Shown here piece after piece: positions 6,539 through 61,842 of a stretch of 64,000 nt of DNA. This DNA is from Paramoeba atlantica (lineage: Eukaryota; Protista; Discosea). The position numbers were made by a program, and so were the translations under genes. Below the pieces are notes generated by a model. It was given only the letters and a program-made list of their open reading frames with translations. It was not told where the DNA came from and ran no database searches. How positions within the stretch are numbered: the stretch's first letter is position 1; each line of letters starts with the position of its first letter. The stretch covers positions 124,001-188,000 of the forward strand of contig CDRNVI010000059.1 in NCBI GenBank assembly GCA_977017575.1, read 5' to 3'.

Positions 6539-7321
6539 ATGATTTTCGCCGTGAGTAGCGCATTATTTTACACGCTAGGTCACCGCTTCTCTTGTAAGGA
6601 TGTCAGCGACATAATCCGACGTCCGGCTAAGGTATCTTCTTCGATACTTCCCGCCGAACATGATTTGATGCGCCTTATTCAAGGTGTAAAAAATCCCGAT
6701 TCCTCGTGGACTCCGGACACTCCTGCCTGCGATTGGGTCGGTGTCAGTTGCAACCATGCAGAAAAGGTGCGTGCAATACGCTGGGAATGGATGCAAAGTT
6801 TATATGGAACTCTGTCCCTGCGCTATTTACCGGTATCGCTTGTATCATTTTCAGTGGACCGAACGTTTAATTTGGCACATGAAAATAAAATTAGTGGGGA
6901 AATCGAATTAACGAGCCTTCCAGCAGGTTTGACTGACTTCAACCTCAGCGAAAACCGATTTAATGGTAGTGTAGATCTTACCTCCTTGCCTGAAAATCTA
7001 ACACACTTGTATTTGAATGGCAATGACTTATGCGGAGAGGTTTGTCTGGATTATTTGCCCTTGAAATTGCAACATCTTAGCCTAAGTAAGAATCATTTTA
7101 CCGGAACGCCCATTTTAACCAAGCTACCTCCCGCATTGGTATCTCTCGGCTTGTCGCAGAACCAATTCGAGGGTCATATCAATTTGGACGCTCTGCCTTT
7201 AAGCTTAAAACATTTATGGCTAGATGAGAATAAGGAGCTCTCAGGAACCTATAGTCTTAATATGCTTCCTAAGTGCATAAGTCTAACATGCACCTCAACC
7301 GGCCTCTCAAGGTGGAATTAG
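6539..7321 (+). CDS. LRR family protein 1 (LRRNT-like cap + 23-aa LRRs)
   Basis: RRPAKV..ILPAEHDL, SW...PACDWVGVSC cap, repeats LPxxLxxLxLxxNxFxGxVDL. Confidence 0.9.
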   Translation: MIFAVSSALFYTLGHRFSCKDVSDIIRRPAKVSSSILPAEHDLMRLIQGVKNPDSSWTPDTPACDWVGVSCNHAEKVRAIRWEWMQSLYGTLSLRYLPVSLVSFSVDRTFNLAHENKISGEIELTSLPAGLTDFNLSENRFNGSVDLTSLPENLTHLYLNGNDLCGEVCLDYLPLKLQHLSLSKNHFTGTPILTKLPPALVSLGLSQNQFEGHINLDALPLSLKHLWLDENKELSGTYSLNMLPKCISLTCTSTGLSRWN

Positions 7322-7930
7322 CCCAAAGGAATTAACCGAATATAAAATGAGGGGCTGCGGGTGGATCGTCTGAATGTCTTGCCGCTCATGAAGAGTTAGT
7401 CTTCGATATTTAGGCATATAAACTGCGAGTTTCGATTAGAAAGAAAATCTACTAATTATGATAAAAAATGTACCTCTTGGTACACTGAGTATGACAATCT
7501 TATAAATTGTGGTACACTGCGTATGACAATTTGGTGCACTGACATTGACAATCCACCTGTCTTTTCCGTTATGGAAACATACGGAATATAGCTCGTCATT
7601 TCGAAATTTGTTCACGAATTAATATTTCACAATTTTTTATTTTAGGGTATCTTTATTTCAAAATTTTTTACGACCGCTGCACCCCATACACAGCAGTGGT
7701 GTAGAAACTCCATTTACAGCGCTTAGGCACTCAAAATCACATGATAGAAAGAATTGCGCGGCGAAGCAGCGTGCTTTTTTTTTTGAGGGTCGAATAGTTT
7801 TCACCCTCGACCTGAAACATACAACCGCGGCACTATAAGTGGGGAGGGGGCACAGTATCCTTCCTTCCACTGTATGTTTTTTAAAAGCAAACACGTCTTT
7901 CCTATCTCCTTTTTCCCCTCTCCCCCCTCC

Positions 7931-10300
7931 ATGTCTCAACCCCCCCAAACCCCACAACCCCCCTCCAACCCCCACCGTCTCCTCGTCGAGGACGCCACCC
8001 CGGGCTCCGACGACAACAGCACCGTTTCCCTCCACCCCTCCACCATGGCGTCCCTCGAGTTCTTCCACGGGGACACCATCACCCTTAAAGGGAAACGACG
8101 ACACGAGACCGTCGCCGTGGTCCTCTCCACTACCCCAAAAGAGGACCCCCTCGACCCGCACAAAATACGAATGAACAAAATCGTTCGTAAAAACCTAAGG
8201 GTAAAACTCGGGGATGTGGTCTATGCCCATTCTCTGAAAGAAATCCCCTACGGGGTTCGTATCCACGTCCTCCCTTTGGACGACACCATTGTAGGGATCA
8301 CGGGGGATCTGTTCGACTCCTTCCTGAAACCCTATTTCGTGGATAACTACCGCCCCGTGCGGTCCGGGGACCTGTTTGTGGTCCACGGGGGGCTGGGGCG
8401 CTCGGTGGAGTTTAAAGTCGTGGCCACGGACCCCGCCCCCGCGGTGGTCGTGGCCCCCGACACCATGATCCACTGTGAGGGGGACCCGATTAAACGGGCC
8501 GAGGAGGGGGAGGGGCTCGAGGAGATCGGGTATGAGGATATTGGGGGGTGCCGGAAACAGCTGGGGCAGATCCGGGAGATGGTGGAGCTCCCGTTGCGTC
8601 ACCCCGCGTTGTTCTCCACGATTGGGATTAAGCCCCCGCGGGGGATTTTGCTGTACGGTCCCCCGGGGTCGGGGAAGACGCTGATTGCGCGGGCGGTGGC
8701 GAATGAGACCGGGGCGTTCTTCTTTTTAATTAACGGTCCCGAGATTATGAGTAAAATGGCGGGGGAGTCGGAGGGGAATTTGAGGAAGGCGTTCGAGGAG
8801 GCGGAGAAGAATGCCCCCGCAATTGTGTTTATTGATGAGGTAGATTCGATTGCGCCGAAACGGGATAAGGCCCAGGGGGAGGTGGAGAAACGGATTGTGT
8901 CCCAGCTGCTCACGTTAATGGATGGGATTAAAGGGCGGTCCCAGGTGGTGGTGATTGCGGCCACCAACCGGCCGAATATTGTCGACCCCGCGCTGCGTCG
9001 TTTCGGCCGCTTCGATCGCGAGATTGATATTGGTATCCCGGACGATTTAGGCCGTCTGGAAGTTCTCCGGATTCACACGAAGAAGATGAAACTGGAGGAC
9101 ACCGTGGATCTGGAACAAATCGCCCATGACTGCCACGGGTATGTCGGGGCGGATCTCGCACAGCTTTGTACGGAGGCTGCGATGGTGTGTATCCGAGAAA
9201 AAACGGATTTATTGGATTGGGAGGCGGACACCATTGATGCCGAAGTTCTCGCTAGCTTGTGTGTCACCCAGGAACACTTCCGGGAGGCCATGTCGCACTG
9301 TAACCCGAGCTCCCTTCGTGAGACCCATGTGGAGATTCCGAATGTCTCGTGGCAAACCATTGGTGGGCTGGAGAGCGTGAAACGGGAGTTGCAGGAGCTG
9401 ATCCAATACCCGGTCGAGTTTCCCTGGAAATACGAAAAGTTCGGCATGTCCCCTCCGAAAGGGGTTCTGTTTTATGGACCCCCGGGATGTGGAAAGACAC
9501 TGCTGGCCAAGGCGGTGGCCACCGAGTGTCAGGCGAATTTTATCTCCATCAAAGGCCCCGAGCTGCTCACCATGTGGTTTGGAGAGAGTGAGGCGAATGT
9601 GCGGGACGTGTTTGACAAAGCCCGAGCCGCGGCGCCGTGTGTTTTGTTCTTTGACGAGCTCGACTCCGTCGCACGCTCACGTGGGGGAAGCCACGGAGAC
9701 GCCAGCGGCGCCGGGGATCGCGTCATCAACCAAATCCTCACCGAAATGGACGGCATCTCGGTCAAGAAAAACGTCTTCATCATTGGGGCCACCAACCGTC
9801 CCGATATTCTTGACCCCGCGATCATGCGTCCGGGGCGTCTCGACCAGCTGCTGTACATCCCGCTCCCGGACGCCTCCTCCCGTCTCGCGATTCTAAAAGC
9901 GAATCTTCGCAAAAGTCCTATTGCCCCGGATGTGGAGCTGGGGCGTATTGTCAGTGCCACCGAGGGTTTCAGTGGGGCCGATCTCACCTCGATCTGCCAG
10001 CGCGCCGCGAAGCTCGCGATTCGCGAGTCGATTGTAAAGGACGTGGAGCTGGAGAAAATACGACAAACCCGGGACGGGATGGAGGATGACGTACGGGAGG
10101 AGGACCTGGTGCCGTTCATTACCCGGTCCCATTTCGAGGCCGCGATGCGGGAGGCCCGGCGCACGGTCCCGGTGGAGGATGTGAGGCGGTACGAGCTGTT
10201 TGCGCAGCAACTGCAGAGTGCCCGGGGGTTTAGTGATTTTCAGTTTGCGGGGGAGAATGCGCAGGGTGGTGCAGGGAGTGGGGATGATTTGTATGATTAG
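7931..10300 (+). CDS. CDC48: Cell division control protein 48 / VCP / p97 AAA+ ATPase
   Basis: N domain ([17 protein letters not shown]), two AAA modules ([36 protein letters not shown]), C-terminal DDLYD HbYX-type tail. Intronless. Start likely the ATG at 7931. Confidence 0.98.
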
Positions 10301-60867: not shown

Positions 60868-61161
60868 AATGGGCGAAGTTTTTTTGTTCACACTTCACAT
60901 AGCGTTTTGTTCCTATTTCGTAGCGGGGAGATCCATGGCATAATATGATAGTTTAAACTTCAAACTTTGAACAGAGCAGAAAAAGTACCAAAATATTAAA
61001 ATTTATGCTTGAATTCAGTAATCTAACCGGTCAGTTCAATGGACTTCATTTTGTATTGGAGAAAACAGTGCTTTGCTTATTTTATTCCCAAAATATTTCG
61101 TATTGACCTACTTAGCACTATTCTTATACTTTGTGACAAAACTTTATTCGCTTTAGTCATC

Positions 61162-61842
61162 ATGTTTGCGTCTGTAGCAGCACAAGATACGACGAGATCC
61201 AGAAAGGTGCACCAAAGTTGTTTGTCACAGGAGATACGCTTCTCCATTTTCATAGGAAACATTAGCAATCCTGATCGTACCTGGGAACCAACGCAAAGTC
61301 TAAGCTTCTGGCACGGTGTTTCGTGTAATCAGCGTGGGGAGCCGCGAAGCATTCGTTGGAATGGCCTTGAGCTGCGCGCAGAACGACTAATTTGGTCAAG
61401 CCTTCCGATTTCTATGGATACCATTGTTCTTTCATCAAATACCTTGCGGGGGGTGGTTAAGTGGGATGAAATGCCTCGTGAGCTCTCCTTACTTGACCTC
61501 TCCCGCAATGCGTTTTCTGGAACGGTATCGACATCAGACCTCCCACCGAAGTTACTGTCTCTCTCACTGCACTCAAATGAGTTCACCGGTCCACTCCAAC
61601 TACGCACTTTACCCTCTAGGCTGGGCTATGGCTATTTCGGCAGCAATCAGTTTTCTGGATCTCTTGAGTTGTCTCACCTCCCTGAAAGAATGTGTGTCCT
61701 GAGTTTGTCGCGAAATATGTTTTCGGGCACTGTTCATGTGGATAGCCTTCCAAGGGGCCTCAAAATACTAAACTTGATAGGTAACGACTTGCAGGAACTT
61801 TACTCAGAAAAATTGCCTTCATGTGTTTTGTATGGCGAATAG
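61162..61842 (+). CDS. LRR family protein 13
   Basis: AAQDTTRSRKVHQSCLSQE, NPDRTW....W.GVSC, about 6 LRRs. Confidence 0.9.
   Translation: MFASVAAQDTTRSRKVHQSCLSQEIRFSIFIGNISNPDRTWEPTQSLSFWHGVSCNQRGEPRSIRWNGLELRAERLIWSSLPISMDTIVLSSNTLRGVVKWDEMPRELSLLDLSRNAFSGTVSTSDLPPKLLSLSLHSNEFTGPLQLRTLPSRLGYGYFGSNQFSGSLELSHLPERMCVLSLSRNMFSGTVHVDSLPRGLKILNLIGNDLQELYSEKLPSCVLYGE

Follow-up and report, generated by a model that had tools for sequence, protein, structure and literature searches.

Does the conserved segment that precedes an LRR domain address a protein to some destination, or does it belong to the domain itself? The question is posed by a 64-kb stretch of DNA (the window), where an earlier note described a rapidly turning-over recognition or effector repertoire sharing an R..KVRG..LPQE segment, read as a new targeting motif. 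The reading we prefer, to which we give a probability of roughly 0.6, is that of a tandem and dispersed family of small (~200–300 aa), intronless, SL-trans-spliced LRR-only proteins, leaderless in that they are made without a signal peptide, whose pre-cap segment would serve something other than export.

An LRR gene array among transposon remains

A six-frame motif scan combined with ORF tracing identified 14 family members in the 64-kb window (13 genes and one fragment), all on the + strand. Their common plan is a short leader, an R..K[VI]RG..LP.E motif, a W...C.W.GV.C cap and repeats whose period is exactly 23 residues in all members, with ~4–6 repeats each and ~17 in m13. Strict repeat matches within the window are confined to the LRR genes, and the six-frame scan found the motif neither on the − strand nor in window sequence beyond these genes. 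The motif takes its canonical form, K[VI]RG..LP.E, in seven members (m02, m03, m05, m07, m08, m10 and m11) and degenerate forms in six (m01, m06, m09, m12, m13 and m14).

The first gene, m01 (6539..7321; 260 aa from its ATG), has a variant motif (RRPAKVSSSILPAE), both cap cysteines and 5–6 repeats, and m02 (12404..13042; 212 aa; canonical motif RPAKVRGTFLPQE) is identical to P0133 on ENA ERZ24900291:ctg4005l. The fragment, m04 (15565..15984), begins at the cap, lacks a leader and is non-LRR in its downstream part; positions 15551–15782 are 98% identical to 12522–12753 of m02. Immediately upstream of m04, the − strand carries a Tc1-like ORF. Two genes with canonical motifs, m03 (13812..14444; 210 aa) and m05 (20992..21642; 216 aa), are recent paralogs with 92% DNA identity, and each has lost the first cap cysteine (ARQW in m03). 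Degenerate pre-cap sequence (TPVFGAEIPQVE) is joined to an intact cap in m06 (22819..23442; 207 aa), and m07 (25197..25724; 175 aa) is truncated, keeping leader, motif and cap and losing its repeats past residue ~100. Both cap cysteines are gone from m08 (29825..30544; 239 aa; canonical motif) and from m09 (36158..36847; 229 aa; degenerate motif), the latter ending in a hydrophobic tail that is possibly a tail anchor.

Further along are m10 (38496..39083; 195 aa; motif RLGKIRGVHLPTE), m11 (41152..41775; 207 aa; canonical motif) and m12 (42100..42801; 233 aa), whose leader MNAAPPKRRKLGKVSM includes an NLS-like KRRK. The longest member, m13 (46496..48172; 558 aa), carries its ~17 repeats of 23 aa behind a variant motif, GKVHSYALPVV, and has a non-LRR C-terminal tail of ~75 aa. 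The last, m14 (61162..61842), encodes 226 aa from the ATG at 61162, with the variant motif RKVHQSCLSQE; translation from an in-frame ATG further upstream, at 61039, would lengthen the protein by a hydrophobic stretch.

Mobile elements on the + strand include a Tc1/mariner-type DDE_3 transposase remnant (635..1165), a Tc1-type remnant with DDE_3 and HTH_Tnp_Tc3_2 between m06 and m07 (24175..24591) and a PIF/Harbinger-type DDE_Tnp_4 transposase ORF (34308..35093). A high-copy repeat occupies ~42900–43900. The earlier picture of intact, truncated and tailed copies coexisting among transposons is accurate for this array, with its DDE_3 and DDE_Tnp_4 remains, and extends to the fragmentary copy m04. 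Rapid turnover driven by selection is another matter: dN/dS for the youngest pair, m03/m05, is ~0.74, compatible with relaxed constraint. The array would have grown as genes were duplicated locally and gained or lost repeats, and decayed under weak constraint by frameshift, truncation and transposon insertion.

Expansion of the family, also claimed by the note, is confirmed by the 14 copies in the window and by hundreds genome-wide. A leader-plus-cap profile gives 345 cluster representatives at E ≤ 1e-10 and 911 hits at E ≤ 1e-3; 135 of the best 150 matches are short proteins. All traced examples are located in ERZ24900291, the window's assembly, and paralogs are only ~30–40% identical overall. 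The family is also expressed, a point on which the earlier note had staked its reading: in what seems to be an RNA run, labelled 'RNA?', a 725-nt contig covers 38468–39192 (m10) and a 309-nt contig covers 42455–42763 (m12), and SL-bearing paralog mRNAs are described below.

The cap, the pre-cap segment and the leader

Pfam LRRNT_2 scores above cutoff in m01 (21.6 bits versus 20.7), m11 (24.9 bits, the best match), m12 and m13, and the match begins directly after LPQE. Among plant LRR ectodomains, the family profile hits BRI1 at 3e-36 and SERK1 from profile position 27, and the best Foldseek matches are the SERK1/2, BAK1 and PRK ectodomains. The proteins are thus predicted to form a SERK/BAK1-ectodomain-like solenoid in which the 23-residue repeats come after a plant-type LRRNT_2 cap; the conserved L, P, N, F and G positions would make up its core, and the x positions, which vary, a putative ligand-binding face. 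The proposal of a variable recognition surface is in line with this arrangement, since the variable residues fall at the x positions of LxxLxLxxN. The cap cysteine pair is retained in 110 of 122 family members (~90%), and a disulfide, hence an oxidising or secretory location, would fit this pattern better than the cytosol.

AF2 models were obtained for m11 (pLDDT 89.9, 13 sequences) and m10 (pLDDT 94.5, 99 sequences). The predicted cap helix begins at Q25/E26 in m11 and at T28/E29 in m10, and the residues ahead of it are coil, with pLDDT <50 with the shallow alignment and 67–85 with the deep one. As modelled, LP.EY.L is structural, the first turn of the LRRNT_2 cap helix, and R..K[VI]RG is a conserved non-helical coil just ahead of it. 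The supposed single motif therefore falls into two parts, and the possibility that it is an integral helix of the N-cap, which the note had listed among the findings that would refute its proposal, holds for LP.E and fails for R..KVRG.

Conservation of the segment across 124 members is considerable (R.68, K.84, V.85, R.71, G.69, L.90, P.98, E.96 and Y.88), and synonymous codons for the motif residues differ among copies, which places this conservation at the protein level. The RG pair covaries weakly with the first-repeat Trp. For a stretch with no secondary structure, K-V-R-G conservation of ~70–85% is what is commonly seen in short linear motifs that a partner protein recognises. PEXEL, RxLR and PTS2 were considered and rejected for consensus mismatch, and an export code of the PEXEL/RxLR type also because the motif is not placed after a signal peptide.

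A portable targeting motif would be expected to be something other than a fixture of one domain, but in 121 kb of this genome, a small sample, 14 of 14 relaxed matches sit directly before LRR caps and none was seen on non-LRR ORFs. The idea of a targeting code fares no better with the homologous Perkinsela-clade segment, R[LI]D...LSDQ, which is not basic. We do not think that the pre-cap segment is a portable PEXEL/RxLR-like export code. It probably belongs instead to the domain's N-terminal module, where it would either pack against the cap together with the first repeat or act as a family-wide docking site.

Upstream of the motif, a single in-frame ATG follows the nearest stop in 10 of the 13 leader-bearing members, 12–32 codons before the K (m14 has two, m06 and m09 were not caught by the regex and the fragment m04 has none), and this ATG is preceded by pyrimidine-rich sequence. 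Two paralog transcripts carry the SL 3′ end GTTTCTGTACCTTGTTG, and their proteins start 9–10 residues ahead of the motif; one SL-bearing transcript is 99% identical to a gene of the window's assembly. In one paralog the hydrophobic leader remains only as an upstream ORF. Family members are made without an ER signal peptide, in line with the note's remark that most have no classical one; both the ORF structure and the two SL-bearing mRNAs agree on this point. Many leaders are nonetheless alike in shape, with a short hydrophobic start and then small-small-Asp, and this shape might act as a sorting signal of a very short or unconventional kind. An NLS-like P.KRRK stands upstream of the motif in 18 of 124 members (~15%), and m12 also has KRRK; this subset suggests that localisation matters.

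Relatives of the family

The window genome is that of an SL-trans-splicing, intronless kinetoplastid, with Perkinsela as its closest named relative. Sequence comparison makes the window family homologous to a Perkinsela-clade LRR family that matches the Perkinsela 'leucine-rich proteins', a family already described: 462+ such proteins, many of them expressed, are reported for the Perkinsela genome (Tanifuji et al. 2017, Sci Rep, PMC5601477, Supplementary Note 1.4). That study found no link to bodonins, speculated on protein secretion to the organism's own plasma membrane or the host cytoplasm, and did not describe leader, cap or fold. Our Perkinsela-clade set comes from an assembly that shares 86% CDC48 identity with Perkinsela CCAP 1560/4, and a published Perkinsela example has the same leader. 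Alignment by hhalign (probability 100, E 2.6e-47) pairs KVRG..LPQE with R[LI]D...LSDQ, so that R..K[VI]RG appears to be the local version of an older skeleton, [KR]-[VLI]-x4-L-[PS]-x-[EQ]. Both prokinetoplastid genomes hold hundreds of small LRR-only paralogs built alike: the leader is short and hydrophobic/acidic, a conserved segment precedes the W..W.GV.C-type cap, and the LP..L..L.L..N.F.G repeats have 23 residues. They differ in the pre-cap sequence (LGR[LI]D...LSDQ..ME in Perkinsela, R..K[VI]RG..LPQEY here) and in the cap cysteines, one or both of which are missing in four of the eight Perkinsela-clade sequences examined versus ~90% retention in the window family. The window organism is a different, more distant lineage, its CDC48 being 75% identical to that of the Perkinsela clade.

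Plant LRRNT_2 ectodomains (SERK1/BAK1, PRK3/6, PGIP, BRI1) offer the best sequence and fold matches, with the same cap helix, W..C.W.GV.C cysteine pair and LxxLxLxxNxFxGxI repeat core and, in SERKs, ~5 repeats. Unlike plant receptors, the window family lacks a signal peptide, transmembrane segment, kinase and C-terminal Cys cap; its repeats have 23 residues with ...IDLxxLP rather than 24 with ...IPxxLGxL, and it alone of the two has a conserved pre-cap segment. PEXEL (RxLxE/Q/D) and oomycete RxLR resemble the motif as short Arg-containing N-terminal sequences spread across large variable families, but they are placed behind an ER signal peptide and occur in numerous cargo families unrelated to one another, and PEXEL is cleaved, whereas the window motif has no signal peptide, mismatches both consensuses, is half the start of a structural helix and was found on one domain family only (121 kb). 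Bacterial type III LPX-repeat effectors (YopM, 3.9e-28, and SspH2, 7e-14, against the family profile; also IpaH) share repeats opening with LP, an L..L.[LV]..N.L core, an unstructured N-terminal leader and the lack of a Sec signal. Their repeats have 20–22 residues, their helical N-cap is of another type and their secretion signal serves the injectisome; the similarity is limited to the repeats. Lineage-specific LRR expansions are found in other kinetoplastids, including Leishmania PSA-2/GP46, Bodo saltans LRR ORFs and T. brucei ESAG8/LRRP; Leishmania PSA differs in its signal peptide and GPI anchor, and ESAG8 in its RING domain and RI-type repeats. The likeness to Bodo saltans is by description, not sequence: clone 96g09 has two adjacent small LRR ORFs, with best matches to plant receptor kinases and no predicted signal peptide (PMC2621209).

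Competing explanations and destination

The array could be largely neutral, selfishly amplified and decaying, derived from a plant-type LRR protein that was originally secreted and later lost the signal peptide. The leader would then be a vestige, its conservation owed to gene conversion and a recent shared origin, not to function. The dN/dS of 0.74, the truncated and fragmentary copies adjoining transposons, the leader surviving only as an upstream ORF and the loss of cap cysteines (both kept in only 7 of 13 window members and, as noted, four of eight Perkinsela-clade sequences affected) all suit this explanation. We consider it improbable, however, given that many copies are transcribed, both here and in Perkinsela (Tanifuji 2017, PMC5601477, Supplementary Note 1.4), and that the skeleton is kept across two lineages as far apart as their CDC48 identity of 75% indicates. 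Moreover, paralogs of ~30–40% identity hold K/V/L/P/E/Y at 84–98% with differing codons, which argues for purifying selection, not recent ancestry. Still less probable is a nuclear family like T. brucei ESAG8/LRRP, with R..KVRG, joined by the upstream KRRK in members that have it, as its nuclear localisation signal; ESAG8 is a nuclear LRR protein. In favor are the basic character of the segment, the canonical P.KRRK of the 18 members noted above, the KRRK of m12 and the lack of a signal peptide, but K-V-R-G lies outside the K-[KR]-x-[KR] rule, the Perkinsela-clade counterpart of the segment is acidic or neutral, proteins of 22–30 kDa enter the nucleus without an NLS, and cap type and repeat class are unlike those of ESAG8.

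Compared with these two, a somewhat better, though doubtful, case can be made for the leader (hydrophobic start, small-small-Asp and R..KVRG) as a lineage-specific sorting signal that exports host-interaction effectors without a classical signal peptide. The conserved K-V-R-G lies in non-helical N-terminal sequence, a fairly fixed 12–32 residues from the start, the leader architecture is common to the Perkinsela-clade family, and the cysteine retention, the KRRK subset and the secretion speculated for Perkinsela (Tanifuji 2017, PMC5601477) would all agree with export. Against it, the family lacks a signal peptide, the host-targeting codes known from eukaryotes operate once a protein has entered the ER, the leaders of the two SL-mapped mRNAs lack a hydrophobic start, the motif was not found on non-LRR ORFs in the 121 kb, and the Perkinsela clade has R[LI]D in place of the basic KVRG, so the chemistry is not conserved. 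We therefore favor a domain-bound, non-export role for the segment in this leaderless LRR-only family. The destination of the proteins bears on the biology of the organism, for which life as an endosymbiont is plausible by analogy, because its closest named relative, Perkinsela, lives as an obligate endosymbiont within the cytoplasm of its host and the nearest Atlas cluster bears the label Discosea, a class of amoebae; both points also speak for export. If the organism inhabits amoeba cytoplasm as Perkinsela does, exported members would reach the host cytoplasm, and the KRRK-bearing subset may reach the host nucleus.

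Members of the family and their surroundings

A six-frame motif scan of the window, with each frame traced back to its preceding stop, found 14 members of the leucine-rich repeat (LRR) family, all on the + strand. Members m01 (6539–7321), m02 (12404–13042), m03 (13812–14444), m05 (20992–21642), m06 (22819–23442), m08 (29825–30544), m10 (38496–39083), m11 (41152–41775), m12 (42100–42801) and m14 (61162–61842) are, like the four that follow, given from an ATG start. m13 (46496–48172) encodes 558 aa, m09 (36158–36847) ends in a hydrophobic tail, m07 (25197–25724) is truncated after the cap and m04 (15565–15984) is a fragment that begins at the cap and duplicates part of m02 at 98% identity. 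m03 and m05 form a 92% identical pair inside a duplicated segment. The motif R..K[VI]RG..LP.E, which lies ahead of the W...C.W.GV.C cap, has its canonical K[VI]RG..LP.E form in seven members and a degenerate form in six. The repeat period is exactly 23 residues in every member, with ~17 repeats in m13, and no strict repeat match occurs outside the family genes on either strand of the window. The description in the earlier note, of about 14 + strand members with 23-residue repeats and about 17 of them in one protein, is confirmed.

The window is gene-dense and intronless, and its + strand carries nearly all of the real genes. Among the neighbors are CDC48 (7874–10300, +), a 450-aa ORF (39510–40862, +) that we take, from its sequence by eye, to be a pseudouridine synthase, and a 1179-aa ORF (51766–55305, +), named in the same way, that is presumably an insulinase-type peptidase. 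DDE_3 and DDE_Tnp_4 transposase remnants (Pfam) are interspersed among the family genes. Directly downstream of m12, at about 42900–43900, assembler word depth rises from ~90 to 600–1900 in two DNA runs; this is a high-copy dispersed repeat in which no ORF matches Pfam. Within the array, the ORF at 44952–45968 has a PRiA4_ORF3 (plasmid pRiA4b ORF-3-like) domain (3e-53) and, after it, a long tail rich in Lys, Ser and Thr. Two sizeable ORFs without a Pfam match, at 17472–18560 (–), the sole long – strand ORF inside the array, and at 62929–63681 (+), may be unclassified mobile-element genes. One DNA-run contig has a 15-nt insertion, CGCAAAAATCTCGCG, at intergenic position 39422, before the 39510–40862 ORF, and ~20 single-base differences over 3.6 kb. 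Its differences in m10 recur in a 2015 run that the tool labeled ‘RNA?’, a guess as to its nature, and the variant is a second haplotype or strain.

When 1.84 billion cluster representatives were scored with a 68-position profile of the leader and cap, 911 matched at E ≤ 1e-3, 345 of them reaching E ≤ 1e-10. Proteins of 67–332 aa make up 135 of the best 150, and every short match that was traced lies in ERZ24900291, the ENA assembly containing the window's contig, where tandem arrays are present on further contigs too. The profile also matches giant proteins of 2000–3200 aa from other organisms (P0128, P0129, P0131, P0132 and similar). Their architecture differs, with the W..C.W.GV.C cap module present 8–20 times per chain and the KVRG motif absent from the N-termini.

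Loss of cap cysteines, the truncation of m07, the m04 fragment beside a Tc1 element and the degenerate motifs indicate that the window array holds decaying copies. For the youngest pair, m03/m05, dS is 0.114, dN is 0.084 and dN/dS is 0.74 (0.51 over leader and cap, 0.83 over the repeats), which is what relaxed constraint gives; positive selection is therefore not accepted as shown, 0.74 being the value for the sole young pair. That the family as a whole is a largely neutral, decaying array nevertheless strikes us as improbable. The synonymous codons used for motif residues differ between copies, so the motif is conserved at the protein level. Across the family, 110 of 122 members retain the two cap cysteines, versus 7 of 13 in the window.

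A prokinetoplastid family in a relative of Perkinsela

At their 5′ ends, two transcripts of paralogs (L006 and L007, JGI sample 3300017035) carry GTTTCTGTACCTTGTTG and ACCTTGTTG, the 3′ terminus of a spliced leader (SL) of kinetoplastid type; the Perkinsela SL primer ends ...CAGTTTCTGTACTTAATTG (Tanifuji 2017, PMC5601477). The L007 protein is 99% identical to a gene on ctg3385l of ERZ24900291, and the window's own contig is ctg4005l (196,542 bp) of the same assembly, so the transcriptome and the genome come from the same organism or a close strain. In a single observation, TG rather than AG precedes the trans-splice acceptor (genomic locus L011:5840–5850 compared with L007:1–20), and frequent non-AG acceptors have been reported for Perkinsela (PMC5601477). 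Neither the canonical trypanosomatid SL core nor this organism's SL 3′ end has a match in the window, as expected for trans-spliced genes. Scans for more SL-bearing transcripts, with VRGxxLPQEY (A4) and with m10 on metagenome contigs, returned pattern matches, none of them confirmed by tblastn.

The window CDC48 shares 75% identity with its Perkinsela CCAP 1560/4 counterpart and 69–72% with the trypanosomatid, diplonemid and euglenid proteins, whereas CDC48s within the Perkinsela clade are 86–95% identical to one another. These values place the organism as a kinetoplastid nearest to, yet outside, the known Perkinsela cluster. Among ESM-Atlas clusters, the one nearest m10 bears the label Discosea, a class of amoebae, and those that come after it bear Euglenozoa; the Discosea label would fit sequences deposited under the name of a host amoeba, but it is only a hint.

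Leucine-rich proteins have been reported from Perkinsela (PMC5601477, Supplementary Note 1.4), and the family is thus not a previously unknown one. Tanifuji 2017 lists 462 predicted ‘leucine-rich proteins’, roughly 9% of about 5,250 predicted genes, with hundreds more found by tBLASTn. RNA-seq supports many of these proteins, and the authors, who found no link to the bodonins of Bodo, call their significance unclear; the main text of PMC5601477 does not mention the family. One supplementary sequence, c3259AC, carries the leader LGRLD...LSQE..MEML (PMC5601477). In Bodo saltans, a 2008 survey described two adjacent small LRR ORFs that have no predicted signal peptide and whose best matches are plant receptor kinases (PMC2621209). 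We found no published description of the leader or cap.

The distant database matches P0003, P0005 and P0006 carry a different leader. P0003 is part of an array of LRR genes in ERZ25071330, an assembly with a CDC48 that matches the Perkinsela CCAP 1560/4 protein at 86% identity. In the alignment of the Perkinsela-clade set (A6), the leaders share the consensus M-hydrophobic-AAD-x-LGR[LI]D-x3-LSDQ-x2-ME, after which comes D[VI]C.W.GV.C, and the leader of c3259AC is of this type. When the alignment of the window's family (A5) is compared with A6 by hhalign, the two match over 215 columns beginning in the pre-cap segment (probability 100, E 2.6e-47), and K-V-R-G..L-P-Q-E is paired with R-[LI]-D-x..L-S-D-Q. 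The window family shares with the Perkinsela-type family (i) homology over leader, cap and repeats; (ii) hundreds of paralogs in one genome and (iii) SL-trans-spliced mRNAs (L006/L007, with ‘RNA?’ contigs on m10 and m12). It joins the prokinetoplastid family of leucine-rich proteins as a new and divergent member.

Start sites, leader and predicted fold

Ten of the 13 leader-bearing members have a single in-frame ATG in the stretch from the upstream stop codon to the motif, and the distance from the start to the K of the motif is 12–32 residues, mostly 15–16. The in-frame sequence upstream of this ATG is a translated pyrimidine-rich tract with no ATG, and a signal peptide encoded from an upstream start was accordingly rejected. 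The mRNAs L006 and L007 have either no upstream in-frame ATG or in-frame stops. Their proteins begin MSDSSVLKPGKVQG... and MDNTSHSRPSKVRG..., 9–10 residues before the motif, and the SL-bearing mRNAs settle the absence of a signal peptide for their own two genes. The 5′ UTR of L007 (52–138; gene at L011:6001–6768) contains a 28-codon upstream ORF (MITVYARVVFLFYTSDAPKSDDLICNH*) that resembles the hydrophobic, small-small-Asp leader start of other members and is separated from the main ORF by a stop. The leader of L007 has become an upstream ORF, and the protein begins 9 residues before the motif.

In the 2015 run, a 725-nt contig spans m10 from 28 nt before the ATG to ~110 nt past the stop, and a 309-nt contig covers part of m12; contigs of this run leave a neighboring housekeeping gene uncovered. 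Position 38468, where this m10 contig begins, does not follow AG, and the contig has no SL letters, so it does not place the m10 acceptor. The earlier interpretation is partly right, in that the family is expanded, variable, expressed and devoid of signal peptides. In a 678-aa relative from a third assembly, ERZ25072283 (P0137, L008:2702–4738), a real hydrophobic segment at the N-terminus precedes KKKRSHRGRVRNAQLPDEF and the cap; the pre-cap segment of this protein lies after a possible signal peptide or signal anchor.

Pfam LRRNT_2 matches m01 (21.6 bits), m11 (24.9), m12 (23.7) and m13 (24.8) above the cutoff of 20.7, falls below it in m10 (17.9) and has no match in the other five members scanned. 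The m11 match begins directly after LPQE. The family profile also matches plant LRR receptor ectodomains (BRI1, 3e-36), with the PEPR1 and SERK1 matches beginning at profile position 27, just after LPQE. An LRRNT_2 cap above the gathering score, as in the four members named, is a feature of plant-type ectodomains. The plant proteins, however, have an N-terminal signal peptide and an extracellular location, and the plant-specific LRR is the 24-residue LxxLxLxxNxLxGxIPxxLGxLxx, in contrast to the 23-residue LPxxLxxLxLxxNxFxGxVDLxx consensus here. Repeat conservation is limited to L1, P2, L5, L8, L10, N13, F15 and G17; variability is high at the x positions. A hydrophobic C-terminal tail is present in 2 of the 122 family members, and in m09.

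AlphaFold2 models of m11 (built from 13 sequences) and m10 (from 99 family sequences) have pLDDT values of 89.9 and 94.5, and the top Foldseek matches are the ectodomains of SERK1/2, BAK1 and PRK3/6. In both models the first helix starts at the Q/E of LP.E (residues 25–32 in m11, 28–35 in m10) and all residues before it are coil, with pLDDT below 50 for the shallow alignment and 67–85 for the deep one. The motif therefore has two parts. In the models the cap helix opens with L-P-x-E-Y-x-L, a structural element, and R..K-V-R-G, just ahead of it, is a conserved non-helical segment. Across the 99 sequences, the R and G of KVRG vary together and covary weakly with the first-repeat Trp, which is suggestive of packing, in a signal confounded by phylogeny.

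Possible roles of the pre-cap segment

Alignment of 124 members on the motif gives the logo R.68-[PA]-[GSA]-K.84-V.85-R.71-G.69-x-x-L.90-P.98-Q.69-E.96-Y.88-x-L.95. Our preferred reading, with a probability of roughly 0.6, is that the pre-cap segment belongs to the N-terminal module of the family, where it either packs on the cap or forms a common docking site. The proposal that the motif is a single undescribed targeting signal does not survive, since one half forms the structural beginning of a helix. This also counts against a sorting or export role, which we consider unlikely. Such a role would account for a K-V-R-G that is 70–85% conserved in paralogs otherwise 30–40% identical and that is placed in a non-helical stretch, close to the N-terminus and at a fairly constant spacing from it. 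In both lineages, many leaders have a short hydrophobic start and then small-small-Asp, and the well-kept Cys pair would suit an oxidizing compartment. The basic chemistry of the K-V-R-G half, however, is not kept in the homologous Perkinsela-clade family, and relaxed motif matches in 121 kb of genome fall on LRR caps in 14 of 14 cases. A leader-only search for non-LRR carriers (P0162 residues 8–47), made with a coarse word index, gave five candidates, all of them family members.

The motif also fits none of the PEXEL, RxLR, PTS2 or classical NLS rules. PEXEL and RxLR (consensus RxLxE/Q/D or RxLR) lie downstream of an ER signal peptide and are carried by unrelated cargo families; unlike these known host-targeting codes, the window motif has no preceding signal peptide, and the spacing of R-[PA]-x-K-V-R-G-x-x-L-P-Q-E misfits. 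For PTS2, [RK]-[LVI]-x5-[HQ]-[LA], inspection of the logo by eye shows K-V-x5 followed by P-Q instead of [HQ]-[LA]. A mitochondrial presequence was rejected because the leaders have acidic residues and only the R-2 spacing fits. That the motif is itself an NLS is very improbable indeed: a subset of members bears a true NLS-like KRRK (upstream P.KRRK in 18 of 124, ~15%, and in m12 in the window), but K-V-R-G has no second basic residue for the monopartite K-[KR]-x-[KR]. We also regard as distinctly unlikely the fuller scenario in which a Perkinsela-like endosymbiont dwelling in the cytoplasm uses a signal-peptide-independent leader export code to deliver LRR proteins into its host amoeba. The code would then consist of the hydrophobic start, small-small-Asp and [KR]-[VLI]-x4-L-[PS]-x-[EQ]; hundreds of variable LRR proteins would be exported, and the KRRK subset would go to the host nucleus adjoining the symbiont.

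To the published Perkinsela family, the present analysis adds a second, more distant lineage with the same leucine-rich expansion, the absence of signal peptides at the mRNA level, proteins predicted to be SERK-like solenoids with a plant-type cap and an N-terminal module that is common to both lineages but differs in its details. Together they make of a ‘curious feature’ a family that is defined and can be tested. Were the proteins to act on a host, theirs would be the first candidate effector repertoire in a non-photosynthetic eukaryote-in-eukaryote endosymbiosis; were their action intracellular, they would constitute an unusually large intracellular recognition family for a protist.
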